Positions 6,191-42,171 of a stretch of DNA of 64,000 nt are shown one piece after another. The notes under the pieces are model-generated. The model was not told where the DNA came from. It ran no database searches and saw nothing but the letters and a program-made list of their open reading frames with translations. How positions within the stretch are numbered: the first letter of the stretch is position 1; every line of letters starts with the position of its first letter. The DNA is from Chlorokybus atmophyticus. Lineage: Eukaryota; Plantae; Mesostigma and Chlorokybus algae. A program made the position numbers and the translations under genes. The DNA is taken from NCBI GenBank assembly GCA_009103225.1, contig RHPI01001311.1, forward strand, positions 62,001 to 126,000, written 5' to 3'.

Positions 6191-6239
6191 AAACTTGTTT
6201 CAGCTGCTACAGCGAAGCTGTGGCAGCTCAAACAAGTTT
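6191..6239. other. 23-bp stem, 3-nt loop hairpin (GCGAAGC core)
   Basis: AAACTTGTTTCAGCTGCTACAGC-GAA-GCTGTGGCAGCTCAAACAAGTTT: 21 Watson-Crick pairs, 1 G-T, 1 mismatch. Confidence 0.7.
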
Positions 6240-7631: not shown

Positions 7632-7643
7632 CACAGTGTCACC
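7629..7643 (+). promoter_or_regulatory. E1 non-tRNA primer-binding site ACTCACAGTGTCACC
   Basis: Directly at the A1/body boundary; no TGG-type tRNA PBS; reverse complement of GGTGACACTGTGAGT in repeat A. Confidence 0.7.
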
Positions 7644-7842
7644 CTCTTTGCTCAAGTGAGTGTAGTTGCAGGCTGCACATCAGCATCGCAATCTGTAGTT
7701 GTACACATCGCAGTGCACTGTCGTCACCGTCATCGCATAGCGCGCACAAGCGCTAGTGTGTTGGGTGATAGCAGCATTGGAGATCCCATTGTAGAGCACA
7801 AACACTCTACCCTTCATCCACTTTCACCATCGCATCAGCTGT

Positions 7843-13122: not shown

Positions 13123-13888
13123 TGTAACAGTCAAGGCCAAATTCTGTGATTTTCATGGCCGTTTTAGGCCTTATTTGTAAGGTACATGTTTTTAATGACT
13201 TGTGGCGGATATCGGCGAGTTATGAGTCTGCCGCGGATATCGACCGGGGCCCCAAGACCAGTCCGGAAGGTGCCAGAAAACGGAGGGCCAGTCGAGAAGG
13301 GCTCGACCAGATTTCTGGAAGGGCCTGGCGCCAAGTAGTATAACTTGACCATATGAGCAGCAAATTAGGAGATCTTTGGTGCGTTGGAAAGGTCTAGAAG
13401 TGTACTACAAGATTCTGCAAGAATATCTTAGCTTCTAGGTCCGTCTAGCGCTAGAATCGTCTAGACAGTAGCATGTGCAGACTGGTAGGTATAAAAGTGA
13501 CATTCTACAATTTGCAATACAACCTTTAGCTCCCTAGTTTCTGGTGTGCAAGCTTGGTGGTGGTTAGCATAGGTTGCTAGCGTGTGTCCACCGGTGTGTG
13601 CTTGCTTGTGTGACGATCCAAGGCGCTACACGAGTCGGTGTGTAGCTTCGAGCGCATGTGCGTGCGTACGCGAGTGGCGGGGCGCGCGTGTGTGCTTGGC
13701 AGAGGGGGCAAGGTTCCGGTGTGAATACCGTGTCTTGGTGAGAGGGTTGTGGATTGGACCAACTCACAGGTGACAAGGCACGAGCACCGTCACAACTGGT
13801 ATCGGAGCACGGTTTACAAAGGTGAGAGAGGAAGTGTGTGGGCGTTTACACTTTTCATTCGGAAGCGGAGTGTAGTGTGTTAGTGGAG

Positions 13889-14917
13889 ATGGAGGATGCT
13901 CGCATGGAAGAGCTTCAAGCTGCCATCTTGGCACTGAGGGAAGAGCTTCATCACACTCAAGCGGCGGCACAAGCACAACGCGAGGCGTATGAGCATGCGA
14001 TGGCGCGTGTACAAATTCCCATGGCATCAAGCTCGCGCGTGCATGTGAAGGTGCCAAAGCCCAAGCCATTCAGGGGTCAACGTGATGGAGATGCAGTGGA
14101 TGAATGGATTTTTCAAGTATCGTCTTGGTTGAAGCTCACGGAGGTGCCCACGCATCTGCACGTGGAGGTTGCAGCGACATTGCTTGAAGGTGCAGCACTT
14201 GTGTGGTGGAGGCATCGATGTACGCGTGTTGCAAACGGGTTGGCGCTACCATTGACCACCATGGAAGAGTTGGCACTGGAGGTCAGGCATCAATTTGTTC
14301 CCGTTGAGAGCGTGAAGGCCGCACGCGACAAACTTGCAGCCCTTGTGCAAATGGGGTCGGTGATGGCGTACACGGCCGCGTTTCAGCGATTGGTGATGTC
14401 CATACCCAATATGACCGAGGAGGAGCAGTTGGACAGGTATACACGTGGTTTAAAACCTTTGGGGCGTAAAGAAGTGGAGCTACGGGACCCGAAGACACTC
14501 GCGGAGGCTATACGCATCGCGGAGCGTCTCGACGCGTTGTACTTCAAGTCCACCACAAGAAACACTGACTGGAGGCAAAGGCATGGTGATCAGCCCCGGG
14601 GAGGCTTTCAACATGCATGGAGACGAGGAGAACCAAGTTCAGCACTTGCCAATGGAGGTGGAGCTGACTCTGGGCCTGCACCAATGGAGGTGGGTGCCAT
14701 ACACACGCATGGAAGTGAGGCGAAGCACGGCGGACGTGGTGAAAGAGGTAAAGGTGTGCGCAAGTGTTATGCGTGTGGGTCGACGGAGCATTTGGCGTAC
14801 GGATGCCCCAAACGAAGCACGCAAAGGCCAACACCGGATGGCAACCCTCGCCGTGATCGTCGCGTCAACACCATGGAGCAAAATGGCGTGGAGCAGGAAA
14901 ACGACTTCCCCCAGTAG
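13889..14917 (+). CDS. gag: Chromovirus Gag (capsid plus CCHC zinc knuckle)
   Basis: VKVPKPKPFRGQRD...EWIFQV; Ty3 capsid-like W...F...F region; CYACGSTEHLAYGC. The ATG at 13889 is the assumed start. Confidence 0.92.
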   Translation: MEDARMEELQAAILALREELHHTQAAAQAQREAYEHAMARVQIPMASSSRVHVKVPKPKPFRGQRDGDAVDEWIFQVSSWLKLTEVPTHLHVEVAATLLEGAALVWWRHRCTRVANGLALPLTTMEELALEVRHQFVPVESVKAARDKLAALVQMGSVMAYTAAFQRLVMSIPNMTEEEQLDRYTRGLKPLGRKEVELRDPKTLAEAIRIAERLDALYFKSTTRNTDWRQRHGDQPRGGFQHAWRRGEPSSALANGGGADSGPAPMEVGAIHTHGSEAKHGGRGERGKGVRKCYACGSTEHLAYGCPKRSTQRPTPDGNPRRDRRVNTMEQNGVEQENDFPQ

Positions 14918-17900
14918 GTGAGGAGGCTACTGCTGGGGATAGGAAGGAGCCTCATGCACGGACGGATGCTGTGACATTTCCATTAAAGAAGCAAGAAGAG
15001 ATGGCTTTGAACGCGCCAATGGTGGTGAGTTATGCAAACGAGGAGACAACAAAGTACTTCGGGCTTCGAGCACACATTTGCGATGACCAAGGACGATGGA
15101 GAGAGTGTAAGCTCATGATTGATAGCGGTGCCAACAGCAACTTTATGAGTATTGATATTGCGCGGCGTTACGGTTGGCTTTCGTCATTACGAGGAGGTGA
15201 AGTGAAGCTCGCTGATGGAGAGCCACCCTCTGGAGGTGATGGCGCTGCGTTTATGACCAAAGAGTTGTGCGTTCGCATTGGGAAGATGAAGGAGAGCATG
15301 CGATTTTGCTGCATCACCCTACGGAACGGGTTTGATGGGATTTTGGGACTACCGTGGCTATGGCAACATAATCCAGCCATCAATTGGAGGAAGCGCGTGC
15401 TCACCATCGAGCGAAACGGTGGAGAGTCCATTCAAGCTGCATCGGACGTCATCGAGGCGCGGCACGCACAATTAGGTGGTACGACAATTGCCCAGATCTC
15501 TTATGTGCAATTGAGGAAGTTATTGTCTCCACGGAAGGCAAAGGCTGCATGGTTGTGCGTGGTGCGCGAAAACACTGCAAAGTCAGCACCGGAGCTGAGT
15601 GACGATGTTCAGACGGCTACTATGGACCCCGAGGTGTGTAAACTTGTTAAAGAATACCAAGATATCATGGTGGACGGACTTCCATCTGGTCTACCACCTC
15701 CACGGAGCGTAGACCACCGTGTGGAGCTGATTGAGGGCGTGCACAAGCCACCGTATCGACCCGTATACAAGTTGTCACCTTTGGAACTGGAAGAGGCCGA
15801 GAGGCAGGTGGCGGACTTGCTGGAAAGAGGCTACATCAGGCCTAGTAAGTCCCCCTATGGTGCACCTATTTTGTTTGTACGAAAGAAGAACGGGAGCTTG
15901 CGCATGTGCGTCGACTACCGAGCTCTCAACAACATCACGAAGAGGAATTGCTTTCCACTCCCACGTATCGACGAGTTGCTGGAGCAATTGCAAGGTGCGC
16001 AGTACTTCACAACACTTGATCTTGCTGGAGGTTATCACCAAATTCGCATCGCGCCCGAGGATGTGGAGAAAACAGCTTTTAACACACGTTATGGGCACTA
16101 CGAGTGGTTGGTCATGTCCTTCGGACTTACGAACGCACCGGCAACATTTCAAACGCTTATGAACAGCGTTTTTGCTGACTTGATTGGTAAGGGAGTCCTC
16201 GTGTACCTCGACGACATTTTGGTGTACGCGACAACAAAGGAGGAGCACGTGGCACTTCTACGGCGCGTGTTGCAGCGTTTGCGCGAACACAAGTTGTACG
16301 CCCAGCTACAAAAGTGCAAATTCTTGCTTCGAGAGGTGGAGTACCTAGGCCACATTGTGTCGCATGAAGGCATCAAGCCGGACCCCAACAAAGTGCAGGT
16401 GGTGCGCGAGTGGGCTGCCCCGACCAATGTAAAGGAGGTGATGTCCTTTTTAGGCCTTGCGGGGTATTATCGCAAGTTTATCATGGGGTTTTCGCGCATA
16501 GCTGCTCCCTTGACTACCCTACTCAAGAAGGGAAAGCATTGGAGCTGGTCAGCAACAGAGGAACATGCATTTGCTGCGTTGAAGAAGGCGCTGACGGAGG
16601 CACCAGTCCTGGCTCACCCCAACATGGAAAAGACATTTATTTTGGCTTGCGACGCGTCCGACACAGCCGTAGGAGCTGTTTTGCAGCAAGACCATGGCAA
16701 CGGCCTTCAACCAGTAGCATTCTTCAGCAAAAAGATGAGTGGTGCGGAGCTGAATTACCCCGTGCACGAGAAGGAACTTTTAGCGCAAGTCATGGCGCTA
16801 CGACAATGGCGTTGTTTTTTGGAAGGCAAAAAGTTCGTGCTTGAGACGGATCACTCTCCACTGAGGTACTTACAAACACAACCTCATCTGAGTCGCAGAC
16901 AAGCTCGATGGCTTGAGTTCTTTCAACTTTTTGACTTCGATATCAAGTACAAGCCCGGTACGTCAAATGGTGTTGCTGACGCGCTGAGCCGGCTTAATGC
17001 AATTGAGGCACTCGCTCAAGTGCAGCCCGAGTGGACCGACCAGATTCGGCAAGTGCTTCGTGAAGACACGGAGGGTATGAAAGTGTTGCAAGAGCTGGAA
17101 AATACAGCTACGGACACAAGTGGGCACTGGTCAATGCGCGACGGGCTGCTGTGGCACCATGGGCGCTTGTACATCCCCAACGTCGCGCATATCCGTGTGA
17201 AGTTGCTGAAGGAAGCTCATGACGTGCCCATTGCTGGTCACCAAGGGTTGGAAAGGACTTTGGCAAGCTTAAAACAGCGTTTTTACTGGCGAGAGATGCA
17301 TCGCGATGTGCGCGACTACGTGGCGTTGTGCGACGCATGCCAAAGGGTGAAGGCAAGCAACCAAAAGCCAGGTGGGTTGCTGCAACCTCTCCCTGTGCCA
17401 TTGTCCAAGTGGGAGCAAGTTACCATGGACTTTATCACGGGGCTACCAAAGACAAAAGAAGGGTACGACGCTATACTTGTGTTCGTCGATAAAACCAGCA
17501 AAATGGTACGCTTGGCACCGTGTAGTGAGTCTTGCACGGCACCGGAGGCAGCACGCTTGTTCGTGAAGCATGTATTTCGTTCTCATGGATTACCACGAAG
17601 CATTGTGAGTGATCGCGACCCGCGCTTTACAAGTAAGTTTTGGGAGGCGCTGCATAGTGCACTGGGTACCACACTGAAGTTTAGCACGGCATTCCACCCG
17701 CAAACTGATGGGCAAACGGAGCGGGCCAACCGTGTGATCGAGGACATGCTGCGTTGCTACGTTAACGCGCGACAAGACAATTGGGAGGAGCTGCTTGAGT
17801 TGGTTGAGTTTGCGATCAACAACCACCACAATGCAAGCACAGGTGTCACTCCCTTCCTTATGAACTACGGGCAACATCCATTGACACCGTTGACGGCATG

Positions 17901-18504
17901 GACACCGCGACGACATGACGTGCGTGTGGAGGCAGCTAATGACTTCCTTACAAAGTGCGCGGACATTAACAAGGCAGCTAGGGATGCGTTATTGGTGGCA
18001 CAAAATCGGCAGAAGCAGTACGCGGACGCGCATCGCCGACACCTCACGTTTCAGGAAGGCGACATTGTGTTACTCTCCGCGAAGCACGTCCAGGTGCGTA
18101 CGGGAGTTCGCAAGCTGAATGAACGCTGGTTGGGACCATTTAAGGTCAGCAAAGTTATCTCGGACGTGGCGTACAAGTTGGAGCTACCCGACACCATGCG
18201 TGTGCACCCCGTTTTTCACGTCTCCCTTCTGAAAGCATATCGAGGACAACCGCCAGAAAGGCCACCCCCCGAAGTTGGCACGGACGGTGAACCCGAGTGG
18301 GAGGTAGAAGACATCCTTGGTGAGAAGTTTGTGCATGGCGTACGCAAGTTCTTAGTGAAATGGAAGGGCTATCCGTTGCATGAAGCATCCTGGGAGCCAG
18401 AGGCACACTTGACTAATGCTCAAGACGTTGTGCGTGCCTATCTTGCTCGACGACAACCTCGCGAGCTTCGAGGACGAAGCTCACCTGGGGGGGGAGGAGT
18501 GTAA
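14896..18504 (+). CDS. pol: Chromovirus Pol (PR-RT-RNase H-integrase-chromodomain), -1 frame relative to gag
   Basis: IDSGA protease; YLDDILV RT; CDAS RNase H; HHCC plus DDE integrase; WEVEDIL...LVKWKGY...SWEP chromodomain. Uninterrupted ORF, open from the GGAAAAC site at 14896-14902. Confidence 0.95.
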   Translation, partial: GKRLPPVGEEATAGDRKEPHARTDAVTFPLKKQEEMALNAPMVVSYANEETTKYFGLRAHICDDQGRWRECKLMIDSGANSNFMSIDIARRYGWLSSLRGGEVKLADGEPPSGGDGAAFMTKELCVRIGKMKESMRFCCITLRNGFDGILGLPWLWQHNPAINWRKRVLTIERNGGESIQAASDVIEARHAQLGGTTIAQISYVQLRKLLSPRKAKAAWLCVVRENTAKSAPELSDDVQTATMDPEVCKLVKEYQDIMVDGLPSGLPPPRSVDHRVELIEGVHKPPYRPVYKLSPLELEEAERQVADLLERGYIRPSKSPYGAPILFVRKKNGSLRMCVDYRALNNITKRNCFPLPRIDELLEQLQGAQYFTTLDLAGGYHQIRIAPEDVEKTAFNTRYGHYEWLVMSFGLTNAPATFQTLMNSVFADLIGKGVLVYLDDILVYATTKEEHVALLRRVLQRLREHKLYAQLQKCKFLLREVEYLGHIVSHEGIKPDPNKVQVVREWAAPTNVKEVMSFLGLAGYYRKFIMGFSRIAAPLTTLLKKGKHWSWSATEEHAFAALKKALTEAPVLAHPNMEKTFILACDASDTAVGAVLQQDHGNGLQPVAFFSKKMSGAELNYPVHEKELLAQVMALRQWRCFLEGKKFVLETDHSPLRYLQTQPHLSRRQARWLEFFQLFDFDIKYKPGTSNGVADALSRLNAIEALAQVQPEWTDQIRQVLREDTEGMKVLQELENTATDTSGHWSMRDGLLWHHGRLYIPNVAHIRVKLLKEAHDVPIAGHQGLERTLASLKQRFYWREMHRDVRDYVALCDACQRVKASNQKPGGLLQPLPVPLSKWEQVTMDFITGLPKTKEGYDAILVFVDKTSKMVRLAPCSESCTAPEAARLFVKHVFRSHGLPRSIVSDRDPRFTSKFWEALHSALGTTLKFSTAFHPQTDGQTERANRVIEDMLRCYVNARQDNWEELLELVEFAINNHHNASTGVTPFLMNYGQHPLTPLTAWTPRRHDVRVEAANDFLTKCADINKAARDALLVAQNRQKQYADAHRRHLTFQEGDIVLLSAKHVQVRTGVRKLNERWLGPFKVSKVISDVAYKLELPDTMRVHPVFHVSLLKAYRGQPPERPPPEVGTDGEPEWEVEDILGEKFVHGVRKFLVKWKGYPLHEASWEPEAHLTNAQDVVRAYLARRQPRELRGRSSPGGGGV

Positions 18505-19468
18505 CAGTCAAGGCCAAATTCTGTGATTTTCATGGCCGTTTTAGGCCTTATTTGTAAGGTACATGTTTTTAATGACTTGTGGCGGATATCGGCGAGTTAT
18601 GAGTCTGCCGCGGATATCGACCGGGGCCCCAAGACCAGTCCGGAAGGTGCCAGAAAACGGAGGGCCAGTCGAGAAGGGCTCGACCAGATTTCTGGAAGGG
18701 CCTGGCGCCAAGTAGTATAACTTGACCATATGAGCAGCAAATTAGGAGATCTTTGGTGCGTTGGAAAGGTCTAGAAGTGTACTACAAGATTCTGCAAGAA
18801 TATCTTAGCTTCTAGTTCCGTCTAGCGCTAGAATCGTCTAGACAGTAGCATGTGCAGACTGGTAGGTATAAAAGTGACATTCTACAATTTGCAATACAAC
18901 CTTTAGCTCCCTAGTTTCTGGTGTGCAAGCTTGGTGGTGGTTAGCATAGGTTGCTAGCGTGTGTCCACCGGTGTGTGCTTGCTTGTGTGACGATCCAAGG
19001 CGCTACACGAGTCGGTGTGTAGCTTCGAGCGCATGCGTGCGTGCGTACGCGAGTGGCGGGGCGCGCGTGTGTGCTTGGCAGAGGGGGCAAGGTTCCGGTG
19101 TGAATACCGTCTTGGTGAGAGGGTTGTGGATTGGACCAACTCACAGGTGACAAGGCACGAGCACCGTCACATGGAGGGAGTGCATGAGGCAATGCTGCGG
19201 CTGCCAGGGGTGGAAGCCGCACGACAACGGCGGCGCATCGCCATTGCTCATGAGCTACACGCACAGCAAACTGACCTCCGGCGCACCATACGCACGCGCG
19301 CCATGACCGTGCTCGATGTGGGAGTGGTACAAGGAAGGTGGGATGCCTACATGGCAGGGATCTTGCGAGTCCCTACCATCACCCATGACATGCGGCAACA
19401 GCTACTACGCGCCGTATACCTGCAGCCCATGTCTCAATATCATCACTGGACCGACATGGACACCGAGC

Positions 19469-20589
19469 TGTCGTGCCTGCCATGGTCGAGGGCAACCTTG
19501 TCTCGGACAGGCTGCGAAGGAGTACTAGTGCTGCACGCATGCTAGTGCCGTGCATTGCATTGGAGTCATGTAAGCAAAAAACAACCCCCCAATCGTGGGC
19601 ATAGGCTTGAAGCTGAGCCTACGCGGTGTTCAGTGCAGTGAACGCGCCGATGCCGCTCGCCACCTTTGTGTACAGACTGTGTCGTAGTGCACACAGTCAA
19701 CAAGCCACTACGATAGGTAGTGCTGTGGACACAGTTCTTTGCATGAGTGGATAGAATGATACACTGTTAAGTGAGGTGAATGAGTGTGCAACACGTGGAT
19801 ACAACACCCTAACTACTGAAACAACACACCTCCGTCAAGCTCACAGCAATGACAGGCACAGCGCACAAGAGCATGCACCGTGTCTCACGCAGTAAGGGAA
19901 TTCTTGGCAACTGGGGCAGCGTGCTTCCAGTTCAAGTCGCTTCACAAGCTCTTTAGAAACAGAGTCTGTACTTCTTAGTACTCACAGTACTCACTTACAG
20001 TGTCACCAGTTAGTCTGGTGACGTGACTTCCTACTTATACATGTCAAATCATGACTGTGCAGTGCCACGCGGGCACTAGGCCAACGGTCACATCGAGGCC
20101 TCATGCTATTTTGGAAATCTCCTAAGACTCGATATAGCACATGTGTTATTAACAGACTTACAAGTGATCAGCTACGCGCGGTCCCTACAGACACGTCTAT
20201 AAAGTAGCCTTAGCTACATGCTACATGAGCGGTACAGTAGCTAGCAGTAGACTGGGGCTCGCGCGGTTTTAATGCTGGTAGCCCGGGCGTGGGGCTGGGT
20301 GTAGGCATGCTCAAGAAGGACTGGCATGCGAGGGTAGATGGCATGACAGCCGTCGTGCCTGCCATGGTTGAGGGCAACCTTGTCTCGGACAGGCTGCGGA
20401 GGAGTGCTAGTGCTGCACGCATGCTAGTGCCGTGCATTGCATTGGAGTCATGTAAGCAAAAAACAACCCCCCAATCGTGGGCATAGGCTTGAAGCTGAGC
20501 CTACGCGGTGTTCAGTGCAGTGGACGCGCCGATGCCGCTCGCCACCTTTGTGTACAAACTGTGTCGTAGTGCACACAGTCAACAAGCCA
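19469..20589 (-). repeat. E2 3' terminal block B1-GC-A2-B2
   Basis: The 226-bp b segments at 19469-19694 and 20351-20576 are nearly identical. 19695-20348 is nearly identical to 29827-30486. Confidence 0.92.
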
Positions 20590-20635
20590 CCCCCCCTGAG
20601 ATTCTGGGGTAGCCCTCTGCTCCAGAACTCAGTTC

Positions 20636-23600
20636 CTACCGACTGTGTGGGGGACCGTTGATGCGGCAGTCATCGCACCAGTACTCCCACAAGGGTACTG
20701 CATCCAGTGGAGGGTCAAGGCAGTAGCAGTGCATGCCTTGATTACAGCCGTCGCATAACATCATCAATGGGTCGTCGTCGGCGCTGCCACACTTCTCGCA
20801 TCGGGTGCTGCGCAGCGGACGCGGGTGCTGGATCTTGGTGAAGCCAGCAATGTATGGGAGATGACAGGGCGCGCAGTTGCCCATGTTGTCCTTCATGCGC
20901 TCGCCTCGTTGTCCCAACAGGTCCAGTACCCCTGTGGGGTGCACCTTCAATACCTTGTAGACAGCACGCCCGACGGAGGTATCGAGGGTGTCGCGTGTAG
21001 ACGCCATACGGTAGACGAAGTCTCCTGACTCGAAGCGGCGCTCCCGCTCCTTGTAGAATCCACTGCGCACACGCTCGTAATGCAGCGTGTCGCGGTACTG
21101 CGCGATGCGCAGGTTGTTGAAGGCCATGGGGACTGTGTGTTCGAACAGCGCACTGCGCACTGTCAGATCATACAACATCTCGTCGGGGTTGTCGAGATTG
21201 TCCACCACTCTGTCGACCTCCTGCTGTGCGCGGAAAGGGAGCAATGGCTGCCTTCCGAACAGTAGATAATATGGGCTGTACTCTCGCAGGGCTGCCTGCT
21301 TGGACAGCTGGTAGCCCATTGCTACCCATGGGAGGTGATCATCGCAGGTATTCTTCTCGTAGGCGAGGACGTACTTGCGCAGTGCCTTCTTGATGGTCTG
21401 CACGGTACGCTCGGCGAGGCCGTTGACCTGCGGGTGGTCGCGTGAGGTGCGACGGTGGTCGATGAAGCATCTGTCGATAAGCTTGTCGAAGGCTCCTCTG
21501 AACTCCGTACCCTGGTCGGTGATGACTTCAGCGCAGCTGCCGAAGCGTCCGAGTACATGGGAGAGGAAAGCCTGGGCTACTCCCTCACTGCTCTTGTCGG
21601 GCAGGGGCACCAGCTCCACCCACTTGGAGAAGTGCTCGATCATGACGAGGATGTAGCGGTTGCCTCGCGCTGAGGGTGCTAGGTTCCCGAGGATGTCCAG
21701 TCCCCAGCGGTAGAACAACCCGGAAATGGGAAGGGGATGCAAGGTGGCGTTGCGCGTGTTGAGGCTGGCGCGAACCATGTCACACTGCTGACAGTTGCTG
21801 ACGAACTCCCGCACCTGTCTGTGCACCCCATACCACCAGTACTGGGTCCTGACCAGGCTGACCGTGCGCTTGACACCGAAGTGCCCGAGCTCGGTGTGAA
21901 GGGAGGAGATGATGCCTTCACGTGCAGCTGGTGTGGGGACCTCCTGATCTGCATCTTGTATCCGTCAATACAGCCTGTCGTTGGCCCAGCGGTAACGCTG
22001 AGTGCGTTGCCGGACGCGATCCTTCTCGCGTGCGCTCATGCCTGCTGGAAGTTGTGTAGTCTGAAAGCAGTGCGAGGGATGGCTCGTCCAGCCAGATGTC
22101 TTGTCGTGTGTGGGTGGGTGCCAGTTCCTCATCATCCACCTCAGGGTCGGCAGCGATTGCTTCTTCTGATAAAGGATCGGTGGTGGTGATGGCGGGCTTG
22201 AGAGCGGGCATGTCCCCGTCTGCTGCTGCTACAGCGATCTGAGTCCTGCGTCCTGAGCGTAGCGCAGCGACAGCGAACATGGTGGCCACACCTGAAGGTG
22301 CAGCTGTAGGACTCAACTCATGTCGGGCGCCTGTGGCGTCGTTGGTGCTGAGGTGGGGGTTACGGCTGAGGCCATCCGCATCCTGGTTGGCAAGGCCTGC
22401 GCGGTGTTCCACCTCAAAGTCGTACTCCTGGAGCAGCAGCGCCCATCGTGCTAACTTTCCTGTCAAGTGCTGGTTGTTCATTGGCCACTTGAGGGGTTGA
22501 TGGTCAGTGACCAGTTGAAACTGTCGTCCAAACAGGAAGGGTCGGAAGAAGGAGATGGCCCACACTGCGGCGAGACACTCCCCTTCGTAGCTGCTGTAGT
22601 TGGCCTCAGCACTGTTGTTGCTGCGGCTGGCGTACGACACTACGCGCTCCTTCTTGTTGTTGTCATGCTGTACGAGCACGGCCCCCATGCCGAGCTTGCT
22701 CCAGTCTGTGTGCAGGATGAACGACCTGGTGTAGTCAGGGCGTTGCAGAATGGGAGCTGTGGTGAGGCGGAGCTTCAGCTCCTGAAAGGCCTCCTGTTGT
22801 GCCTCCTTCCACAAGAACTCGGTGTCCTTCTTCAGTAGTTCGTTGAGAGGCCTTGCGATCTTGGCAAAGTCCTTGACAAACCGGCGGTAATAGTTGGCAA
22901 GGCCGAGGAAGGCCCGCAGCCGCGTGAGGTCTGTGGGGGCAGGGATAGCCACCAGTGCCTCCACTTTGGCCTGCTGTACGTACACACCATGGGGCACAAT
23001 CATGTGTCCTAGGTAGGGTACCTTGTGGGTGAAGAAGGTGCACTTGTCAGGGTGCACCGTCATCCCGACTTCCTTCAGCCTCTGTAGCACCTCTTCGATG
23101 TGCTGGAGATGCTCCTCATTGCTGTGACTGAAGATGAGGATGTCGTCGATGTAGCAGCGTGCGAAGTCCAACCCCTTGAGGGCTTTGTCCATGACGCGCT
23201 GGAACTTGGCCGGAGCGTTCTTCAGTCCGAAGGGCATGACCTTCCACTGGTACAGCTGCCGGTTTCCCCAGAAGGAAGTCTTGTGCTTGTCCTCCTCCTT
23301 GATGGCGATCTGGTTGTACCCTTGGCGCATATCCAGGATACTAAAGACCGTGCAGTCTCCTACATCGTCAAAGATGCCTTCTGCGGTAGGCATTGGATAC
23401 CTGTCCTGCTTGGTCTTGTTGTTGAGGGGGCGATAGTCGCCACACATGCGCCGGTCTGTCCAGTTGCCTGCTGAATCTTTCTTCAGGGGCATGACGGTCG
23501 CGGCCGCAAAGTCCGATGTGGACTCCTCGATCAGGCCTGCATCTAGTAGCGCCTTGCACCTCTGTTCCACCAAGTCTTCTTCTAGCTTGGAGAGGCGGTA

Positions 23601-26600
23601 CTGTCTTCTGAACACCGGTTCGGTGTCCACTAGTTCAATGTCCATCTGGTATGCTGAGCAGATGCCCAGCTCCTTCACACTGAAACTGAATTGGCTCCTC
23701 CACTTGTTGAGGAGAGCCTCGAGTTGCTCTCGAGTCTGGCCTGTGGCCAGCGGTCCAATGGCGTGGGACCACGAGGTAGCGTTGGCGACCACTGGAATGT
23801 CTTCCACAGTGACTGCTGCCTGCTCCTCCATATGGGCGGTCTCGAGGGCGGTGTGTGCTGCTTTGGTCTCTGAAAAGCGAGCAATCCACCCCCCAGCCAG
23901 GTGTTCGAGCTCCTGGAAGGACACATGGCGGTCCTGAAGAGCAAAGCACATTTCCAAGTACCATACCATGCTGTTCTGATTCATGGTGCGCCTTAATAGC
24001 TGACACTGTTGACTGGTTGTCAGCGTGCTGGGTTCCGTTGGGTTCTTCCAGCTGTCCAGTGTTGGAATTTAACACCATGCCGTCGCCTCCATTGCGGAAC
24101 GCGTAGGAGCCTGGATAGGATACAAGTGTGGGTAGTGCGCGGCGCGGCTGACCAGGCTGGTTGCACTGGTAGAAGTGGTGGCGGTCAAGGCGTGTGACCG
24201 GTTGCGCTGTGCGTCCAGGGTCCAGGATGTCATCGACGACGAGATTTCGTGGCCGATTGCTGTATAGGTATTTTGCCAGAAACAGGTCTTCCACAATGGC
24301 CAGGTTGGTCCACTTGGCGCGGACGCGGTGTGCGCGAGATCCATGACGCGCGGCGTTGATTTTGAGAGGATGCCCCAGCAAGGAGCATACTTGCCGATAG
24401 GCCTTGGCGACGTGATGCCGCTTGTCATCCTCGGAGTGCACATTCTCGATGATGTACCCCAAGGGCCTAGCGATCTGACTGGTCTGCAGGAGTTTGATGA
24501 CTCTCATTAGCTCCCAGAACAGCTGTGAGCGAGGATCAGAGAGCCCGTGGCCTCTGCCTGCAGGTGATCCTTGGTAATCCAGCGGATGTTCTGCGGCAGA
24601 GCCTTCTGGCTCCCTTGCAGTGCCGACAGCGGTAGCTGCTGCGGGTAGCGCTGGTGCAGCTGTCGTAAATGATGGCTCAGAGCCTCCTGTGCATGAGGGT
24701 CAGGGTCACAGTAGAGGTACTTGGTGACTGTTGTTCCTGTGTTGAGGACAGCCGCAAGCCCACTGCCTATGCCTCCGAACAGCTCCAGCACGGTGATGCC
24801 TTGTTGTCGGCGGAACATGTGGAACTCCACAACTCCAGTAGCTATGTGGTACTGCTCCTGCACTGTAGCCTGGTCTTTGTAGACAGGGAACTGTGCAGTG
24901 AGCTGAGGCCTAGTCAGTAGCATGTGTGCTGCTACTTGTGCGCTCCAGCGACGCTCGGATGGCTCCTGGAAAGCCACTTCTTTGGTGACAGTCTCCTGAG
25001 GCTCATCGTACGGTGTAGGAGAGTCCTCTTCAGCGTTTAGGCTCGGGCTCGAGCTCGTTGCAGTTGTCCTCGGCTGCGTTCGGGCACGAGGCACACGTGA
25101 GCTTTTTGTGAGACTGTAGGTGGCTGCTGCGGCCGATCTTCGTTGCAAGCGGGCCTTGGCCACCAGTTCGAGAGGTAGGAATCCCTGCTCCTCTCCATTA
25201 TCCTCATCCTAATGCGGTCGAAACCATGCCTGCTCAGTCCAGCAGTCCATCCCCATGCCGACAGGGAAGTTGCAGTCCTGTCCCAGCAGTAGGTCAAAGG
25301 ACCCGGCATCGGTGACCACCCACCTTTGTACAATCTCGGTGCTGTGGGAAGGGTTTAGTTCTGTGAGGCGGATGCTCACAGCCTGCTTGGTAAGGCCGAG
25401 CACCTTGTCGCGGTTGCCGGTTGCGGTGTCCAGCTGGTAGAGACAGGGAAGCAGCTCAGCGCTGGTGGTGCCGTGATCTCGTGCGAGGTAGCGCCCAATG
25501 ATGACAGGCTGTGCTCCAGTGTCCAGCATCACGCGTTTGGGTGCCCGCCCCTTGACGGTCACGTGCTTGCCTTCGTTGGCAATCATGGCTGCATTGGCGT
25601 TGATGCGCAGCCTCTTGCAGCGACAGAACCTCTTGTGTGGGGAGACTGTTGCTTTACTCTCATCTGCGGGGCCTGACTGCATGGCAGCCAGGGCTCCTCT
25701 GCCTGATGGATCTTGTGGGCCTCCTTGTCCTCGGCTTTGTCCAAACCGTCCTTGTCGCGGTTGCTGGTACACGCGTGGTGGCCTAGGCACTGGAGGTGCT
25801 GCTGCAACCTGTCCAAGTGGAGGTGCAGGAGGGTTGACCCTCTGTGCAGCTGTTGTCATGCCAGGAGGAGTGGCCAGTGGCTGTGGCGGGAATTCTGGAG
25901 GACCTGGTGTTTGCGGGACTGCCTCGCGTGCAGCCTGCTCCTCTGCATAGATCCATCGCACAGCATGGGCTGCCTCTCTGACTAGTGTACCTTCCCATGT
26001 AGCCGTCGCATTGTTGTCCACGTCTATATAGCGATGGTTTTGAGGCATGGGCTGCAGGTACACTGCGCGCAGGAGCCGCGCTCTCATGTCGTGGGTGATG
26101 GTGGGCACCCTAAGGATCCCTGCCATGTAAGCATCCCATCTGCCGTTGATCACTCCCACTTCCAGCACTGTTATTGCTCGTGTGCGTACAGTGAGGCGGG
26201 TCTCTGGCTGTTGGACATGCTGCTCGTAAGCAGCGGCGATGCGCCTGCGCTGACGTCCTGCCTCCACTCCTGGCAAACTCAGTATAGCCTCCAGAGCTCC
26301 CTCCAGAGTGTCAGTGGCGGCGGAAGCCACTTCATCATAGGCTTGCCGTATGGAGCGAAGGAATGCGTCCACCCACGCTATTCTGGCGCCAAAAGCGAAC
26401 AACGGGACTGCAGGATGGTTGGTGACCAGCCATGTCACTAACCGTGCGCGTGCCGCATTGCCATTGTCTCGCATCCCAAGCATCTGCCGAAGTCCAATGC
26501 CTTCTTGCCGATGCAGCATGGTTGCTTGTCGCAACAGAGCAGTGCGTAGTTGTTGCTCTCCAACCAGTCCTGCTCCATCTCTTTGTGTACACCCTTGTGG

Positions 26601-29600
26601 TGTAAGGTAGCCCCTCCCTGGCTCCCTTTGGTCCTCAGGCAGATCCTCCACCAGCGCAGGCAGCAACGGGGCGATCACCCCCCTGATTTGCTGAGCCAAC
26701 GCCTTCACTTGGTCAGAGTTGGTCTCGACGAAAAGCGGAGTGGTGCTGGAGGATGGACCAGCAGTTGGTGACTGAGGTATTGGTGCACGCGTAGCTTCAA
26801 GAGCTTGTTCACGTGCAGCAATGGCGGCAGCTTGATCCTGTTGCCAATAATATGCTTGTTCCAGTGCGTGGTAGCGCTGATGAAGGCGAGCGGTTGTAGG
26901 AGGTCCGAGTGCTTCATCAGTGCCCAAAGGTAGGTCGGCTGCGTCGGCAACGCGCTGCTGGATGGTGTTGCGGCGGTCCCGATACATGTCCAGCGGGCTG
27001 GGTTCAAAGATGGTGGTTGGCATGCGTGCAGGCTGGCGCGGGGCTGTCTGCATGTTGTTGTGCAACGCCCAGAACAGCTGCAGGGCCAACTCCAGCACTA
27101 CAGGTGGGCTGTAGCTGATCCAAAACACCCTGTCACGCATCGGAGGTGCAGTGCCAGCAAGGATCTCATCTTCCAACTGGTGTCGAGTGAGTGTTGGAAG
27201 GGTGTGAACCTCTGGTAATGGGAAGACGCGGTCATCGCGGGCGACACGCGTGGTGCGCTCCCCCCCCCCCGACCGAAGGCGATGGTAGTGGGGTCTGCTC
27301 CGCGCAGGATGGTCTCCCATGCTCGCTCAGCTTGCCGACCAGCTGGGACAGCCTGAGTGACGTCGAGAGCGGGCAGAGTAGCTGCGCGCATCGCTGCAGA
27401 GACAGCGGGCTCGACGATGACAATTGTGGCAGTTGCGACGGTACCGGTGGTGCGAGAGTTGTCTCAACGCCTACGGACAGAGGCACTGCTGCAGTGGGAA
27501 GTGCACCGCCCACTGGTGCAGATTCGGTAGAGATGGCGGCTGTTGCCATTGTGTTCACCAGTGTCGGCGTCCCGGTGTCCATCGGTGTACCAGGTTGTGG
27601 TGCAACTGGAGTGGGTGCTGCTGACGTTGGTGGAGTCGACGTTGTAGCCGGTTTGGCTGTTGCTGCAGAGGCAGCACCACTGGTGGCTTCGGAGGAGGTG
27701 CCTGCTGATGTTGTTGCAGCTTCCCCTCGTGCTCGTCGTGATGGTTGCACGCATGACGGAGTGTTCCTGTCTCTCTCGCGTTTTGCAGCCATCAGCGCCC
27801 ATCGGGCAGCGTAGCAGGCGCGGTAGTCCTGCTCCTTGTCTTCCTCCAAGCGTGCCATACGCGCCATGAGGGCTGCCATATGGTCATCATCTGGTGGGTT
27901 GGCTGAAGCCTTGGCGGCAACAGCAGCAGCGCGCGGACGTGTCTCTGGTCCCTTACGCTGAGGAGGTCTGTTCTTCCCCCTGTAGCCTTGCTCTTCCTTG
28001 CGAACACTGGCGTTGTTGTTGTTGTTACTGCCACCAGCGTTGTTGCTGTTGTGGGCTCCAGTGTTGTTGCTATTGTAGCCACTGAAGTGGTTGCCAGTGT
28101 GGCCTCCAGTGTTGTTGCAGTTGTAGCCACTGAAGTTGTTGCCAGTGTGGCCTCCAGTGTTGTTGCTGTTGTAGCCACCGGCGTAGTTGTGGTTGTAGCT
28201 GTTGGCGGGCTTCAACTCTGGGAACTTGAGCCAGCAAACTGACTCCAAATGACCGGTCTTGTGACAGTGGTCGCAAACCAAAGTTGAGTATTCTTCGGTG
28301 CACTCCTTTTGGTAGTGCCCATGCCGTCCACAGCGATGACACCGCACAGGGGCAGCAAGTGCAGCATGAGCTGACCGTTTCCCTTTGACGCGTGCTGGTG
28401 GAGCGTCCCGGCCACGGTCGCGATGAGGAGGCTCTGTTGTCGTGCTGACTACAGGCCGTGCGGCGCTGCGGTTGGTGTCCAGCACTGCCTTCTCATACAC
28501 CTAGCGCTTGTGGATGGCTTGTGCAGTCTCGAAGGCTTCTTTGAGGGTGTAGCCAAGGGGCCTGCTGTAGTTCAGAGTCAGGCGTGTCGACTCGCTCGGA
28601 GCAGCATCCAACTCATTGACGTATATCACTGCAGCAGCCTCCTCACTGACAATCTTGTAGTCAGTGTCCTTCAGCAGACCTTTCAGTTTGGAGTACAAGC
28701 GGAGGGGATCCTCATTGGGCTTGCGTCGGAAGCGTCTCAGCTCCTCAACCTTGCTGGTGGTCTGAGGAGGGAAGGTGCGGCGCAGGGCAGCGTACAGGTC
28801 CTTGAGTGGAGAATCAGAGATGGCAGCACCTACGGTGATGGCTGGTGCGCGCAGTGCTACTGACCCGAGGGTGAAAGCGCTGCCTCCTGCACGAGAGCCA
28901 GGTGTTGCTGGAGGTAGAGGAGTACCCCACTCTGCGGCTGCCGCTTGCTGTACAGCTCTTTGTTCCTCAATGATGATGGCAGAACGGTCAAGGATGCGGA
29001 CTCGACGTGTGGCCTCCTTGGACTCAACTTCTGCAGGGGTCAAGTTGACAAGTACCAACTCTGGTTCCTCCTCCTCTGCCTGCTTGAGAGCTGCAGCTAT
29101 GGTCAAGCCTGTTACTGCAACTGAAGTGGCAGGTGGAACGACACCTGCTGGACGGTGCAGGGATGCAGATGCTATGGTGCTGGCAAGCTCGCCATAGCCG
29201 TCTACTCGATGCAGTTCAGCAACGGACTTCCAGACATCGTGTGCTTCATGATCAAGATACTGAGCAGCAATGTGGAAAGAGATCTCATCTGACCAGTCTT
29301 TGTTCTTCAGAGCTTGCTGCCGCATCTTGGAGTGGAACTTGATGATGAACTCATCCAGCGAGGTGGTGCCGGCACGTCCGGAGAAGCGCAGGGATGTGGT
29401 TGAACTGGAAGACTCCATCTCGTTGTCGTCGCTGTCCGATGATAGTGGAGAAGCTTGATGACGAGGAGTAGAGTGGAGCGGGGTAAAGCTGGAGATGGAG
29501 CGCGAGCCTCTGCTGCTGCGGTCGACGCTCCCGTCACTGGTCCGCTCGTAGGTGAGGTTGGTGGTTGGGCTCCAACTGCTGAGGTCACCCTCGTCTATTG

Positions 29601-29625
29601 GGGAGAACGGGGTGGGCCTGCTCAT
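20636..29625 (-). pseudogene. E2 polyprotein: Gag (2 CCHC) - unknown domain - aspartic protease - DNMT3-like C5 methyltransferase - RT - RNase H - DDE integrase - PHD; disrupted by stops, frameshifts and deletions
   Basis: ORFs 28501-29625 and 27232-28500 (gag); 25209-27320 (MLDTGAQ protease); 24507-25163 and 23635-24507 (MTase); 21918-23984 (YIDDILIF RT, HTDWS RNase H); 20636-21826 (WGLDILG, TDQGTEF, GLAER integrase plus C4HC3 PHD). Confidence 0.92.
23960..24797 (-). pseudogene. E2 DNMT3-like cytosine methyltransferase domain (motifs IV and IX deleted)
   Basis: Motif I ITVLELFGGIGSG, VI GYIIENV, VIII GSRAHRVRAKWTNL; the motif X remnant aligns to E1. Confidence 0.85.
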
Positions 29626-29814
29626 ACAGCTGGTCCAGAGGTGAAAGGGTAGAGTGCTTGTGCTCTACCGTCTATCCTGATGCTGTTACCACCCAACACA
29701 CTAGTGCTTGTGCGCACTATGTGATGACAATGATAACGAATGCCCAGCGATCTATCCCTGGGTGCAGACTGCACTATCTGATGCAGATTGCAACACACTC
29801 ACTTGTGCAAAGAG

Positions 29815-30486
29815 GGTGACACTGTAAGTCAACAAGCCACTACGATAGGTAGTGCTGTGGACACAGTTCTTTGCATGAGTGGATAGATGATAGACTGTTA
29901 AGTGAGGTGAATGAGTGTGCAACACGTGGATACAACACCCTGACTACTGAAACAACACACCACCGTCAAGCTCACAGCAATGACAGGCACAGCGCACAAG
30001 AGCATGCACCGTGTCTCACGCAGTAAGGGAATTCTTGGCAACCGGGGCAGCGTGCTTCCAGTTCAAGTCGCTTCACAAGCTCTTTAGAAACAGAGTCTTT
30101 ACTTCTTAATACTCCTAGTACTCACAGTACTCACTTACAGTGTCACCAGTTAGTCTGATGACATGACTTCCTACTTATACATGTCAAATCATGACTGTGC
30201 AGTGCCACGCGGGCACTAGGCCAACGGTCACATCGAGGCCTCATGCTATTTCGGAAATCTCCTAAGACTCGATATAGCACATGTGTTATTAACAGACTTA
30301 CAAGTGATCAGCTACGCGCGGTCCCTACAGACATTTCTATAAAGTAGCCTTAGCTACATGCTACATGAGCGGTACAGTAGCTAGCAGTAGACTGGGGCTC
30401 GCGCGATTTTCATGCTGGTAGCCCGGGCGTGGGGCTGGGTGTAGGCATGCTCGAGAAGGACTGGCATGCGGGTAGATGGCATGACA
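29815..30486 (-). repeat. E2 repeat A1 with TATA (30179-30172), predicted self-primer (30147-30133) and PBS (29829-29815)
   Basis: On the minus strand GGTGACACTGTAAGT begins 32 nt after TATAAGTA, and its exact reverse complement ACTTACAGTGTCACC lies at the A1/body boundary. Confidence 0.85.
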
Positions 30487-30490
30487 GAGC

Positions 30491-34788: not shown

Positions 34789-37700
34789 TGTTGAGAGTAT
34801 TCCTACATACGATCAGCATCGACCCTCCACACAGGAGTAGAAGGTCGTAAGGACGAGCACTAGGTCCGGACTTAGCAAGATGGCATCGTCGGACCAGACT
34901 CCGGACTCCAGACTGGAGCCTTACTAACTGCTTCGTATCTCCGCGTATACTTACTCATATTAGGCGTGTAAGAGCTTGTTGGAAAGCTCTGGTTGTAAGC
35001 AAGACAACGCAACTTAGAGCACGTCAAAAGGCTGAGTATAGCTTACGCAGTGCTTGTAAACGTAGACGTGTGTGTAACTGGCTGGTATAAGAACCAGCGG
35101 ACAACTTGTAATAGATGAATGTGATGTGACTTGTGTATGCTCTGGTGGCGGTAGCTCTGTCCGTGTGTATCCATGCTTGCATGGGCTACATGTGCATGCT
35201 AGTCCTTCAACAGGTTATGGGCCCACACTACGCTTGAGGAGTGTGAGACTAGCTTGTGTGCATAGTAGTTCTACACTACGGTAGCTTGTTAGTAGCAGAG
35301 CCTTGGGTGTCAACTGCAAGGAAGGCAGGCACGACAGAGATGGAGGCGACCTACGACAAGGGGCAGATTGCAAAGTTAGACACCGACAACTACAACACAT
35401 GGTGCGTGGGAATGAAGGCCTTGCTCATTTACAAGAAGGTGTGGAAGTACGTCGATCCGAAGGCACCACCACCAACACCAGGAGCGAACACTGTGTGGTC
35501 AGAGCATTCAGCAGAAGCACACTCTTTGCTTGTGTTGAACAGCAAACCGCATCACTTTCCCATGCTCACTGCATGTGAAGATGGTAGACAAGCTTGGGAA
35601 AAGCTATCAGCCGTTTTCAGAGCCAAGAACAATGCCAGAAAGTTGCATCTATGCAAGCAGCTGAGCGCACTCAGGAAGGAGGCAGCAGAACCCATCACAA
35701 AGTATGTTGCGCGCGCGAGAGAGCTGTGGGCGGACCTCATCAACGTCGGCCACAACATGGGGGAGACGGAGGTAGTGCTGGCCATTATTGCAGGGCTACC
35801 AGCAGAGTACGAGGTCGTCGCAACCCTGCTGGAGACGTCATCATCGGAGTTAACGTTGGACGATGTGCTACCGAAGCTGCTCACCGTGGAGTAGAGGGTT
35901 GTGAAGAAGGACGAGCAAGCTGATGCCGTCGCCTTCTACACCGGCAAGCACGCAAAGAAGAGCAACCATGAAGAGAAGTACAAGGGCAACAAGCCAGGCA
36001 ATCCTCGTCACAAAGACCTCATATGCCACTGGTGTGGTTGGAAGGGGCACATTGTGAAGGACTGTAGGAAGAAACAATTGGGGCAACCTAGAGCAAGCAC
36101 CAGCAACATCGGCAACGAGCACCAACACAAGGAGAAACATGTCGCCTTCACTGCATCCAGTTCGAGGGCGGGCACAGCTTTCTGGGTGGTGGACTCTGGC
36201 TGCGATCGTCATCTCACACCAAACAAGGAGGTGATGGAGGGCTACAGGAAGCTGACGTCCACAATCAAGGTGGCGGGCTTCGGTGGCGAAGTACTGGTGG
36301 CTGAGGGAGTTGGCAACGTACGACTCCAGTGCAAGGTTGGTAACACACTACGCGAGGTGTTGTTACGCAACGTCCTGCATGTTCCTAAGGCTATTGCGAG
36401 TCTATTCTCTGTGAGGGTTGCGGAGCGCTTAGGCGCGGAGATCCTATTTCGGAAGGGTGGCTGCTCAGTCATCCTTGATGGGGTCGTGCACATGGTTGGA
36501 ATCGCTGATCCGGGAGGGCTCTACCACGTGGAGCAGCCTCAAGACAGAGACATTCAAGCCATGGTGGTGAAGGACAAGGAGTCGCCAACATTGTGGCATC
36601 GAAGGTTCGGGCATCTCAGCTACGTCAACCTCACTCGCCTTGTCGCTGAGAAGATGGTCAAGGGCATCCATCTCAGCACAGAAGAACTCAAGAATGCATC
36701 AGGTGCACTTTGTGAACCATGCCTGGTTGCAAAGCAGCATGCTATGCCATTCCCATCATCCTCTTCTAGCAGTCAGCATCCTTGCGAGCTTGTGCACATG
36801 GATGTCTGTGGCCCTATGCGCATTGTGGCGAAGGGAGGGGCCAGGTACTTTGCTACATTCCTCGACGACTACAGCAAGCTGTCCATCATCTTTCCATTGA
36901 CGCTCAAGTCAGAAGTTGCTGGAGCTGTGCGCACAGTTGTGGCCTTGTTGGAGACCCAGTCTGGCAACAAGATGACGGCAATGAGGAGTGATCGAGGAGG
37001 GGAGTACATCAACAAGGAGTTGAAGAAGTTTTTCGCCAGCAAGGGCATACGCCACGAGACAACGGCACCCTACACCCCGCAGCAGAATGGAGCAGCTGAA
37101 CGCCTCAACAGGACACTCTTGGAGCGTGTTCGAGCCATGCTCAACGACACAAAGATGGAAGACAGTTTGTGGAAGGAGGCGGTACTCACTGCCAACTACA
37201 TCCGCAACAGGTCTCCGGTGAGCTCAGAGCAGAAGACTCCGTGGGAGCACTTCTATGGAGCCACACCAGATGTGAGTGGTATGCGTGTGTTTGGATGCAC
37301 GGCATATGCACTAGTGCCTAAACAGCTCAGGCANCCGTCAGCAAAAAGGGCATCTTTTTGGCTATGAACCGGGTTCCAAGGCTTACAGGATCTTGCTCGA
37401 GGACACTCAGAAGATCATTGTGAGCAGAGAGGTGGTTTTCCATTAGGGATTATCACAGCCAGAAGCAGGCTTCTTTCCGGGAGATGACGATGAAGTACAG
37501 CCACAGGAGCATCCCAAGACAGTGGAGGCTGAGGGCGAGGCAGTCATCAACAACAAGGGTCAGCGAGACTCAGTTGTAGCAGGCCAGAAGAAGCCGCACG
37601 TACAGCAGGAGCACGCAGCTCGGAGATACCCAGTGAGGGAGAGAAAGGCACCTGACTTCCTACACAAGGCACACGTCGCCAGTGTGCATAATGAGGAGCC

Positions 37701-39690: not shown

Positions 39691-39695
39691 GGGGT

Positions 39696-41810: not shown

Positions 41811-42171
41811 ACCGTAACCATTAGGCTACGGCAGCAAAAATCGCTGTCGTAGGGGGAGCCACATGTTCCATATATGCCCTATCCCATATAAATTACATTC
41901 CTCCCAACCCCGTTGTCCATGGGGTCGTCGCCACGCGACTGCAAGTCTTATTAAGCTTCGCTTGATACGGTACGCGGCGAGTCGCATGCCTGACCGTCCC
42001 CATGAGACCCTCGTCACTGCACGTTGACAGCCAATTATTAGGCAAACCTGCAACCGCTCAGACGGTCGTAGGTTATGAATTACCGCCGCTTTAACGAGTC
42101 ACGAGCGCGCTTTCAGTCACTACTTTGCCAATTTTGCCTTGTATCGTTTTACGACAATTAGCAGTTCTATT

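Follow-up and report, generated by a model that had tools for sequence, protein, structure and literature searches.

Two dead Ty3/gypsy copies with split direct repeats in Chlorokybus atmophyticus, and the probably permuted provirus of a streptophyte-wide, putatively self-priming clade

Introduction

Split direct repeats of the form A1...B1-A2-B2 define the PAT and Ngaro elements (PMC4157794), and the replication of these elements of the DIRS order is thought to go through circles (PMC7192593). Here we analyse two retroelement copies, E1 and E2, which combine such repeats with a Ty3/gypsy coding region; both lie within a 64,000-nt stretch of the genome of the alga Chlorokybus atmophyticus (assembly GCA_009103225.1, contig RHPI01001311.1, positions 62,001 to 126,000 of the forward strand; hereafter the window, numbered from its first letter). 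The closest described system is KnitGypsy-Dnmt3 of Klebsormidium nitens, an element with Gypsy domains and DIRS-type repeats in the order A-coding region-B-A-B, which is presented in one sentence of the legend to Fig. 4c of de Mendoza et al. (2018, Nat Commun 9:1341; PMC5890265). A first-pass annotation of the window knew of no precedent for E1 and E2; KnitGypsy-Dnmt3 has the same layout, and beyond that paper no mention of a Gypsy-domain element so arranged was found in the literature searched. E1 and E2 belong to a known but barely described kind of element, for which the mechanism proposed below is read from sequence. We consider it probable that they are dead copies of a streptophyte-wide, self-priming Ty3/gypsy clade, the provirus of which would be a circular permutation of the product of reverse transcription.

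Retrotransposons with long terminal repeats (LTRs) are taught as having their integrase sites at the tips of the LTRs defined by reverse transcriptase (RT). Tf1, in which the 5' end of the transcript folds back onto the primer-binding site (PBS) and thereby primes its own copying, is bounded on either side by a complete LTR of the ordinary kind, at whose tips the integrase sites are located. PAT, Ngaro and TOC elements are typically devoid of target duplications. In the bacterial 'copy-out, paste-in' systems IS3 and IS911, a DDE enzyme integrates a junction at which the two ends abut a few bases apart, and at the retroviral LTR-LTR junction the spacer measures 4 nt. The integrases of prototype foamy virus (PFV) and human immunodeficiency virus 1 (HIV-1) cut the palindromic LTR-LTR junction of two-LTR circles (PMC1180852, PMC1905944); the chemistry considered below therefore has a precedent, where the first-pass annotation knew of none for circle-based integration by a DDE integrase. 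To our knowledge, what is new within the literature searched is the clade-wide distribution of the layout, the conserved internal attachment (att) palindrome, the self-priming signature, the variable joint between A and B and the absence of a mirror form.

Results and Discussion

Two copies of one permuted layout

E1 and E2 begin with a repeat A (A1), which is followed by the coding body, a run of seven G, a repeat B (B1), the dinucleotide GC and second copies of both repeats (A2 and B2). This anatomy (Table 1) was verified by repeat finding, by BLAST of the window against itself and by direct reading of the ends, and the layout given in the first-pass annotation was confirmed for both copies, together with the ends TGTCA...CGACA and the 4-bp target-site duplications (TSDs), exact in E2 and GCCG/ACCG in E1. 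In E2, the two copies of A are 96.2% and the two copies of B 97.5% identical. A ends and B starts with the same 13-nt sequence, X (TGGCTTGTTGACT), of which each element has three copies: one closing A1, one following the G7 tract and one at the joint of A2 with B2. The length of about 226 bp previously ascribed to B is correct for E2 if X is left out (226 nt, against 239 nt with X), but not for B1 of E1, which retains only 66 nt.

E1 carries the same X and the same junction, CGACA-GC-TGTCA, as E2. The window contains exactly two copies of a 16-nt motif spanning this junction and seven of X, in each case against an expectation of 0.01, which excludes chance. The seventh exact copy of X (6417-6429, minus strand) is situated some 600 nt upstream of E1 in AT-rich surroundings; neither A nor B could be aligned around it, a motif similar to the self-primer region described below is found about 170 nt before it, and a third relative, by now very diverged, may have left it behind.

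The layout recurs throughout a clade

With the RT open reading frame (ORF) of E2 as query, more than 1300 relatives were retrieved at E <= 0.001, most commonly with the architecture RT-RNase H-integrase-PHD. Named relatives come from Closterium, Klebsormidium, Marchantia and Calypogeia; the closest match is at most 63% identical, and two K. nitens proteins (P0027 and P0085) match with E values of 1e-162 and 1e-133 at 43-47% identity. Repeats were analysed in 11 loci retrieved through exact protein matches and in 80 from a scan of metagenomes, and duplicates were removed. Seventeen distinct loci display the full A-body-B-A-B order, and a further 14 have B-A-B after the integrase with a 5' end that is off the contig or undetected. 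About 11 others are of the form A-body-B or body-B, with B ending in ...GACA followed by unrelated flank, and a few loci are cut by contig ends. The arrangements AB...AB, BA...BA and B upstream of the body were found in no locus.

The 31 distinct loci with B-A-B present a G-run, B1...ACA-NN-TGT...A2 and B2 right after the integrase, and derive from K. nitens (L004), Closterium sp. NIES-64 (L088), Marchantia polymorpha (L086), Calypogeia fissa (L003) and moss-associated or JGI metagenome contigs; none of the 31 has the canonical layout of two full LTRs. In all related loci the G-run stands directly 5' of B1, and throughout the clade B terminates in GACA, A begins with TGTC and exactly two bases separate them. 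These bases are GC, or AC, GT, AT or AA in old copies, which is mostly consistent with decay by deamination. An exact 4-bp TSD flanks eight insertions (E2, L003, L011, L014, L020, L061, L062 and L088), and three of the four bases match in five more (E1, L036, L037, L040 and L055). Some copies are little diverged: L088 (positions 6105-13687) has two repeat pairs that are each 100% identical, an exact TSD (TCAT) and a 15-nt self-primer match, and looks like a very recent insertion; the repeats of L002 are 100% identical, and those of L003, flanked by GTCA, are 99-100% identical.

A few loci are incomplete or depart from this picture. In the Klebsormidium locus L004, which contains an assembly gap within the element, A1 is undetectable. 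The Closterium NIES-54 locus L087 has no recognisable B-A-B and instead carries, after pol, a tandem array of about 1 kb with a 14-nt unit (6897-7874). The contigs of the closest intact relatives (L089, L090 and L091) stop before B2. Copies with a single B (L032/L033, L039, L042, L046, L048/L050, L051, L057, L059 and L078) end exactly at GACA, and L051, of the form A-body-B, has an exact 4-bp TSD.

The recurrence of the same features across loci of independent assemblies excludes both an assembly artefact and a one-off rearrangement. It bears on the suspicion that E1 and E2 are ordinary LTR elements (with A+B or B+A at each end) distorted by rearrangement, by an adjacent solo LTR or by mis-assembly of repeats, as their nested, repeat-rich setting and the deletions and insertions of E1 might suggest. 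The order of the repeats, the junction, the G-run and the placement of the PBS are however the same in E1, E2 and the 31 loci, some of which belong to chromosome-scale assemblies, and the canonical form is seen in no relative. Moreover, two nested elements of the window that have ordinary LTRs (Table 1) were assembled normally and serve as internal controls, indicating that the assembly treats terminal repeats as it should. Already contradicted by the survey, this explanation retains hardly any credibility.

A self-priming signature and the LTR it predicts

A1 is directly followed by 11-15 nt whose exact reverse complement occurs within A, about 30 nt downstream of a TATA-like motif. Such a perfect complement, 12-15 nt long, was found in ten elements: E2 (15 nt), E1 (12 nt, measured against its own A2), L001, L003, L011, L014, L025, L026, L037 and L088. 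It lies at offset 0 from the end of A across five lineages that are unrelated in sequence there; the self-primer sequences differ between lineages while complementarity is kept, and E2 and E1 are distinguished by a compensatory T..A / C..G change. As a control, only 4 of 24000 11-mers from element bodies have a complement in A. In the minimum free energy (MFE) fold of the E2 RNA from the self-primer site to the PBS, nucleotides 1-12 pair with the PBS (overall z = -1.96). We interpret this complementarity as the signature of Tf1-type self-priming, from which the transcript start and the use of the primer are predicted; A1 of E2 would accordingly hold, besides the TATA-like motif, a putative transcript start, R and U5. 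A PBS of the tRNA type was also considered, as X starts with TGG like the complement of a tRNA, and was set aside as less likely: the window contains no tRNA gene, and the self-primer match accounts for the bases that follow A.

Taken together, the self-primer match and the polypurine G-run would place the start of the transcript inside A, the end of U5 at the end of A and the start of U3 at B. Since the G-run abuts B and the PBS abuts A, the RT-defined LTR is B-GC-A, and ordinary reverse transcription would make BA-body-BA. On this point the first-pass annotation, which had equated the LTR with B+A, flanked by the polypurine tract (PPT) on one side and the PBS on the other, finds good support, though it had missed that the PBS is of the self-primer type.

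A proposed route from linear cDNA to provirus

The ends on which the integrase would act, TGTC at the start of A and GACA at the end of B, are not found at the tips of this LTR; they abut in its middle as GACA-GC-TGTC, a 10-bp palindrome with an invariant 2-nt spacer. We propose the following route. The transcript would begin inside A and its 5' end would prime at the PBS after A1, so that reverse transcription builds BA-body-BA, with B-GC-A as the LTR. The termini of this cDNA, with the end of A on one side and the start of B on the other, would then be joined or copied across, a step that in the lineage of the window may be guided by X, a 13-nt terminal redundancy, through annealing or a switch of template. 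The integrase would cut both strands of the 5'-LTR junction 2 nt apart, after each CA, leaving CA-3'OH ends with 2-nt 5' overhangs, similar to processed retroviral ends. The cut would be directional, only the junction of the 5' LTR being used, whether on structural or on kinetic grounds. Our preferred reading is that this junction, which for long would be the sole fully double-stranded one during plus-strand synthesis, comes first while the 3' LTR waits; alternatively, the termini might be connected only after the 5'-LTR junction has been captured and cut. The resulting A-body-B-GC-A-B is the smallest layout with integrase-type ends whose transcript would still have R on either side, which would explain why this is the propagating form.

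The joint of A2 with B2, at which the cDNA termini would have met, is variable. In most copies (moss clade) the last base of U5 directly abuts the first base after the G-run, whereas L020 and L062 are short by 2 nt and L014 has one extra base. In L001 the joint is occupied by an inverted piece of the element's own body (1827-2589) of about 763-765 nt (L001:9039-9801), which either was taken up as filler in the joining of the termini or reflects faulty assembly of this contig, whose coverage is 3x. In E1 and E2 the joint contains one copy of X (an overlap of 13-14 nt), where blunt joining would yield two. From these sequences, the A2/B2 joint looks as if it were remade in each cycle, while the RNA-inherited spacer between B1 and A2 stays at 2 nt.

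The first-pass annotation had derived the provirus from a two-LTR circle opened at one internal B/A junction. The topology is retained here, with opening at the junction of the 5' LTR, but a symmetric circle is not. In that alternative, host end-joining makes a covalent two-LTR circle and the integrase opens either of its two identical B/A palindromes. The topology, the 10-bp palindromic junction with its invariant spacer and the end-joining-like variation of the A2/B2 joint (losses of 2 nt, one extra base, one filler) would all fit, and PFV and HIV-1 integrases cut such palindromes. Equivalent junctions, however, predict the mirror form A-B-A-body-B about equally often, and this form was found at no locus, as opposed to 33 loci with B-A-B after pol (the 31 relatives, E1 and E2), in 19 of which both ends are verified. 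A random choice of junction is accordingly very unlikely: either the step is directional, or no free closed circle is involved. Quicker loss of the mirror form through recombination between its two copies of A is an implausible explanation for zero against 33, and the single 13-nt terminal repeat at the joint of E1 and E2 suggests annealing or template switching over blunt ligation. Symmetric random opening of a circle is therefore rejected as the sole mechanism, and we judge the end-joined circle in general to be unlikely.

Another possibility is that A-body-B is the primary product, obtained from the linear cDNA by cuts in its two LTR junctions, or from a one-LTR circle by a cut in its single junction, and that the A-B tail was added later by gene conversion or unequal recombination. 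The roughly 11 related loci of this form, with B ending exactly at GACA, and the exact duplication around L051 are what it would lead one to expect. Such a product would nevertheless yield no RNA with R at both ends and would thus leave no progeny; most copies have B-A-B, among them the youngest (L088, L002 and L003), with the TSD flanking A1 and B2; and A-body-B is the expected decay product of recombination between B1 and B2. We thus regard this order of events as very improbable.

Returning to the directional use of the 5'-LTR junction, we advance, tentatively, the stronger proposition that the DDE integrase of the clade never acts on cDNA tips and acts only on the inherited att palindrome inside the LTR, once annealing, template switching or ligation has joined the termini, and directionally at the 5' LTR. 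Several considerations weigh against the route as a whole. The reason why only the 5'-LTR junction should be used is a conjecture. X is seen only in the lineage of the window and other lineages join their termini with an overlap of 0-2 nt, so that X is no general requirement. The A-body-B loci could be later deletions between B1 and B2, or primary products of cutting at both junctions. Many of the surveyed loci come from few metagenomes and probably from few host genomes, and hence count as independent insertions, not as independent lineages. E1 and E2, being broken, are uninformative on activity, and the transcription start site, R and the order of events are all deduced from sequence alone.

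Coding capacity

The Pfam domains of E2 follow one another in the order zf-CCHC, protease, RT, RNase H, rve and a C-terminal PHD finger. The Ty3-type RT, the RNase H and the DDE integrase named in the first-pass annotation are thus present, as is a protease, and no tyrosine recombinase was found. Breaks were counted against the two intact ORFs (1451 and 1039 aa) of the closest relative, L089. Relative to the former, the gag-protease-(methylase-like) gene of E2 has at least three frame changes and two in-frame stops; relative to the latter, its pol has one frame change and one in-frame stop. The alignable coding parts of E1 contain at least three frame changes and at least four stops, besides the three nested insertions, and both elements are dead copies. 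When aligned with 16 intact relatives, E2 nevertheless keeps the D, D and E columns of the integrase together with the two C of its HHCC motif, every one of the eight PHD ligands and the catalytic columns of RT and RNase H. The closest solved structures to its integrase are Ty3 Gag-Pol in the Ty3 intasome (7q5b) and then PFV integrase, and its PHD part is similar to the PHD fingers of UHRF1/2, BAZ2A and ATXR5.

These data also bear on the possibility that E1 and E2 are tyrosine-recombinase elements of the PAT/Ngaro/TOC type, integrating as circles, whose recombinase gene has been lost or acts in trans. The A1...B1-A2-B2 grammar, which defines PAT and Ngaro (PMC4157794), is the point in its favour. 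Against it, neither a tyrosine recombinase nor any further domain was detected in E2 ORFs of at least 120 aa on either strand, and no recombinase is listed among the Pfam annotations of the genes called in the fetched related loci; the DDE integrase is conserved with an intact triad, protease and gag CCHC are present, and TG...CA-type ends with 4-bp duplications recur in many independent insertions. This explanation is contradicted by what has been observed, and we attach virtually no weight to it.

A Dnmt3-type C-5 cytosine methylase is encoded by many relatives (also proteins P0032, P0033 and P0045), either in the gag-protease ORF or, in Marchantia, beside RT. The domain (PF00145) is present in the gag-protease ORF of L001, L002, L089, L090 and L091; E2 aligns to the methylase-bearing part of this ORF in L001, L002 and L089, although the ORF pieces of E2 gave no PF00145 hit, its homologous region being below the Pfam threshold. 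The combination of this methylase with an integrase PHD finger that resembles readers of unmodified H3 (UHRF1, ATXR5) suggests chromatin-directed targeting and self-methylation. The gag region of E2, which is much longer than that of its relatives, includes a 24-nt tandem repeat in six overlapping copies (28014-28213, minus strand).

Nested elements and other features of the window

E1 is split by three nested elements: a chromovirus, E2 in reverse orientation and a copia element (Table 1). The chromovirus encodes gag, RT, RNase H, integrase and a chromodomain in long open ORFs and looks young; the best matches of its pol are 47-53% identical (Closterium and others). Within 9575-12710 (plus strand), E1 has a further 2 kb or so without counterpart in E2, to be explained by one more old insertion or by rapid evolution of gag; an ORF in this region (11453-12409) has no Pfam match. 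Outside E1, a 1825-aa ORF (54737-60214, plus strand) contains no Pfam domain, includes repeated units of about 120 nt (58072-58557) and sits in DNA that is strongly skewed for both AT and GC. An ORF with a weak AIG1/GTPase match (836-1564, plus strand) is the sole fragment of a host-like gene that was seen in the window.

Table 1. Positions in the window of E1, E2, their parts and the elements nested in E1.
Feature	Positions	Strand	Remarks
E2, whole element (A1-body-G7-B1-GC-A2-B2)	19469-30486	minus	Ends TGTC...GACA
E2 5' TSD	30487-30490	minus	GCTC in element sense
E2 A1	29827-30486	minus	660 nt; starts TGTCAT; terminates in 13-nt X
E2 TATA-like motif in A1	30175-30179	minus	32 nt upstream of the self-primer 12-mer; sequence reading
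E2 self-primer 12-mer in A1	30136-30147	minus	Exact reverse complement of the PBS; predicted 5' end of transcript
E2 PBS	29815-29826	minus	Directly 3' of A1; paired with transcript nt 1-12 in MFE fold
E2 gag-protease-(DNMT-like) gene	24034-29625	minus	Broken; zf-CCHC 28294-28344, protease 25275-25562
E2 pol	20636-23984	minus	Broken; RT 22998-23459, RNase H 22422-22811, integrase core 21434-21709, PHD 20666-20800
E2 G7 tract (PPT)	20590-20596	minus	Abuts B1 on its 5' side
E2 B1	20351-20589	minus	239 nt; X at start, CGACG at end
E2 GC spacer	20349-20350	minus	Between B1 and A2; centre of att junction
E2 A2	19695-20348	minus	654 nt
E2 B2	19469-19707	minus	239 nt; ends CGACA; X at 19695-19707 common with end of A2
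E2 3' TSD	19465-19468	minus	GCTC in element sense
E1, whole element	7027-41810	plus	Order as in E2; ~77% identity to E2; older
E1 A1	7027-7631	plus	Followed by PBS (7632-7643); 5' TSD GCCG at 7023-7026
E1 G7 tract	40903-40909	plus	
E1 B1	40910-40975	plus	66 nt; internal deletion relative to B2; followed by GC (40976-40977)
E1 A2	40978-41582	plus	95.4% identical to A1; 12-mer complementary to E1 PBS at 41288-41299
E1 B2	41570-41810	plus	241 nt; 3' TSD ACCG at 41811-41814
Nested chromovirus (Ty3/gypsy with chromodomain)	13119-19171	plus	Inside E1; ordinary 678-bp LTRs, 99.3% identical
Nested Ty1/copia element	34789-39692	plus	Inside pol region of E1; ordinary 426-bp LTRs, 100% identical

Implications

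The elements described here form a large and old clade, present in Klebsormidium, Zygnematophyceae, liverworts, moss-associated contigs and the host of the window, in which the integrase sites lie in the middle of the LTR. Standard LTR finders, which seek two full terminal repeats, mis-annotate or miss such elements, and this may explain why the literature contains but a one-line mention of them. Split direct repeats are not diagnostic of tyrosine-recombinase elements, and the role of abutted-end junctions as integrase substrates becomes a question open to sequence census and read mining. If the proposed route is true, obligatory cleavage of the junction would constitute a third integration strategy, between those of LTR retrotransposons and of DIRS/PAT elements; split direct repeats would follow from the position of the RT primer relative to the integration site, whichever enzyme integrates; and the clade would provide a natural case of the old idea of the LTR-LTR junction as a substrate for integration. 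The integrase PHD finger and the methylase of the relatives are worth describing in their own right.

Comparison with known systems

KnitGypsy-Dnmt3 resembles E2 in its Gypsy domain composition and in the order A-coding region-B-A-B; the K. nitens locus L004 has the G-run, B1, GACA-GC-TGTC, A2 and B2, and relatives of E2 share with it a methylase, carried as PF00145 in the gag-protease ORF. It differs in that the methylase-homologous region of E2 is under the Pfam threshold, in the possession of X by E1 and E2 and in the host. The paper describing it gives neither ends and TSD, nor an analysis of PPT and PBS, nor a mechanism (PMC5890265). REM1 of Chlamydomonas was considered as a precedent and rejected, being described in a review as a chromovirus with a truncated, reverse-frame integrase, unlike the present layout.

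With PAT, Ngaro and TOC elements, E1 and E2 have in common the split direct repeats A1...B1-A2-B2, and the logic of an internal B-A joint that encodes both termini probably applies as well. Those elements, however, encode a tyrosine recombinase and lack protease and DDE integrase, both of which are found in E2, and the clade of E1 and E2 has TG...CA-type ends and 4-bp TSDs. In these respects E2 is a member of the Ty3/gypsy group (Metaviridae), with gag (CCHC), protease, RT, RNase H and integrase in the usual order, the catalytic residues D, D(35)E, a short TSD and TG...CA ends; in place of two complete LTRs, E1, E2 and the 31 loci nonetheless carry A alone on their 5' side and B-GC-A-B on their 3' side. 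As in Tf1/sushi elements, the PBS of the clade is complementary to the (predicted) 5' end of the element's own transcript and probably not to a tRNA, over 11-15 nt that co-vary between lineages; unlike in Tf1, the repeats are permuted and the integrase ends lie mid-LTR.

The likeness to PFV and HIV-1 resides in a DDE integrase and in what would be a double cut, like that of a restriction enzyme, where inverted att sites abut, yielding 3'-processed ends. The viral palindrome, however, arises when LTR tips (U5-U3) are joined, in a side or disputed pathway, whereas that of the E1/E2 clade is inherited inside the LTR with a 2-nt spacer, and the A/B joint of its RT termini is non-palindromic. IS3 and IS911 likewise offer a junction of abutted ends as the substrate for DDE integration, but these are bacterial DNA transposons without reverse transcription, in which the junction is made by the transposase itself.

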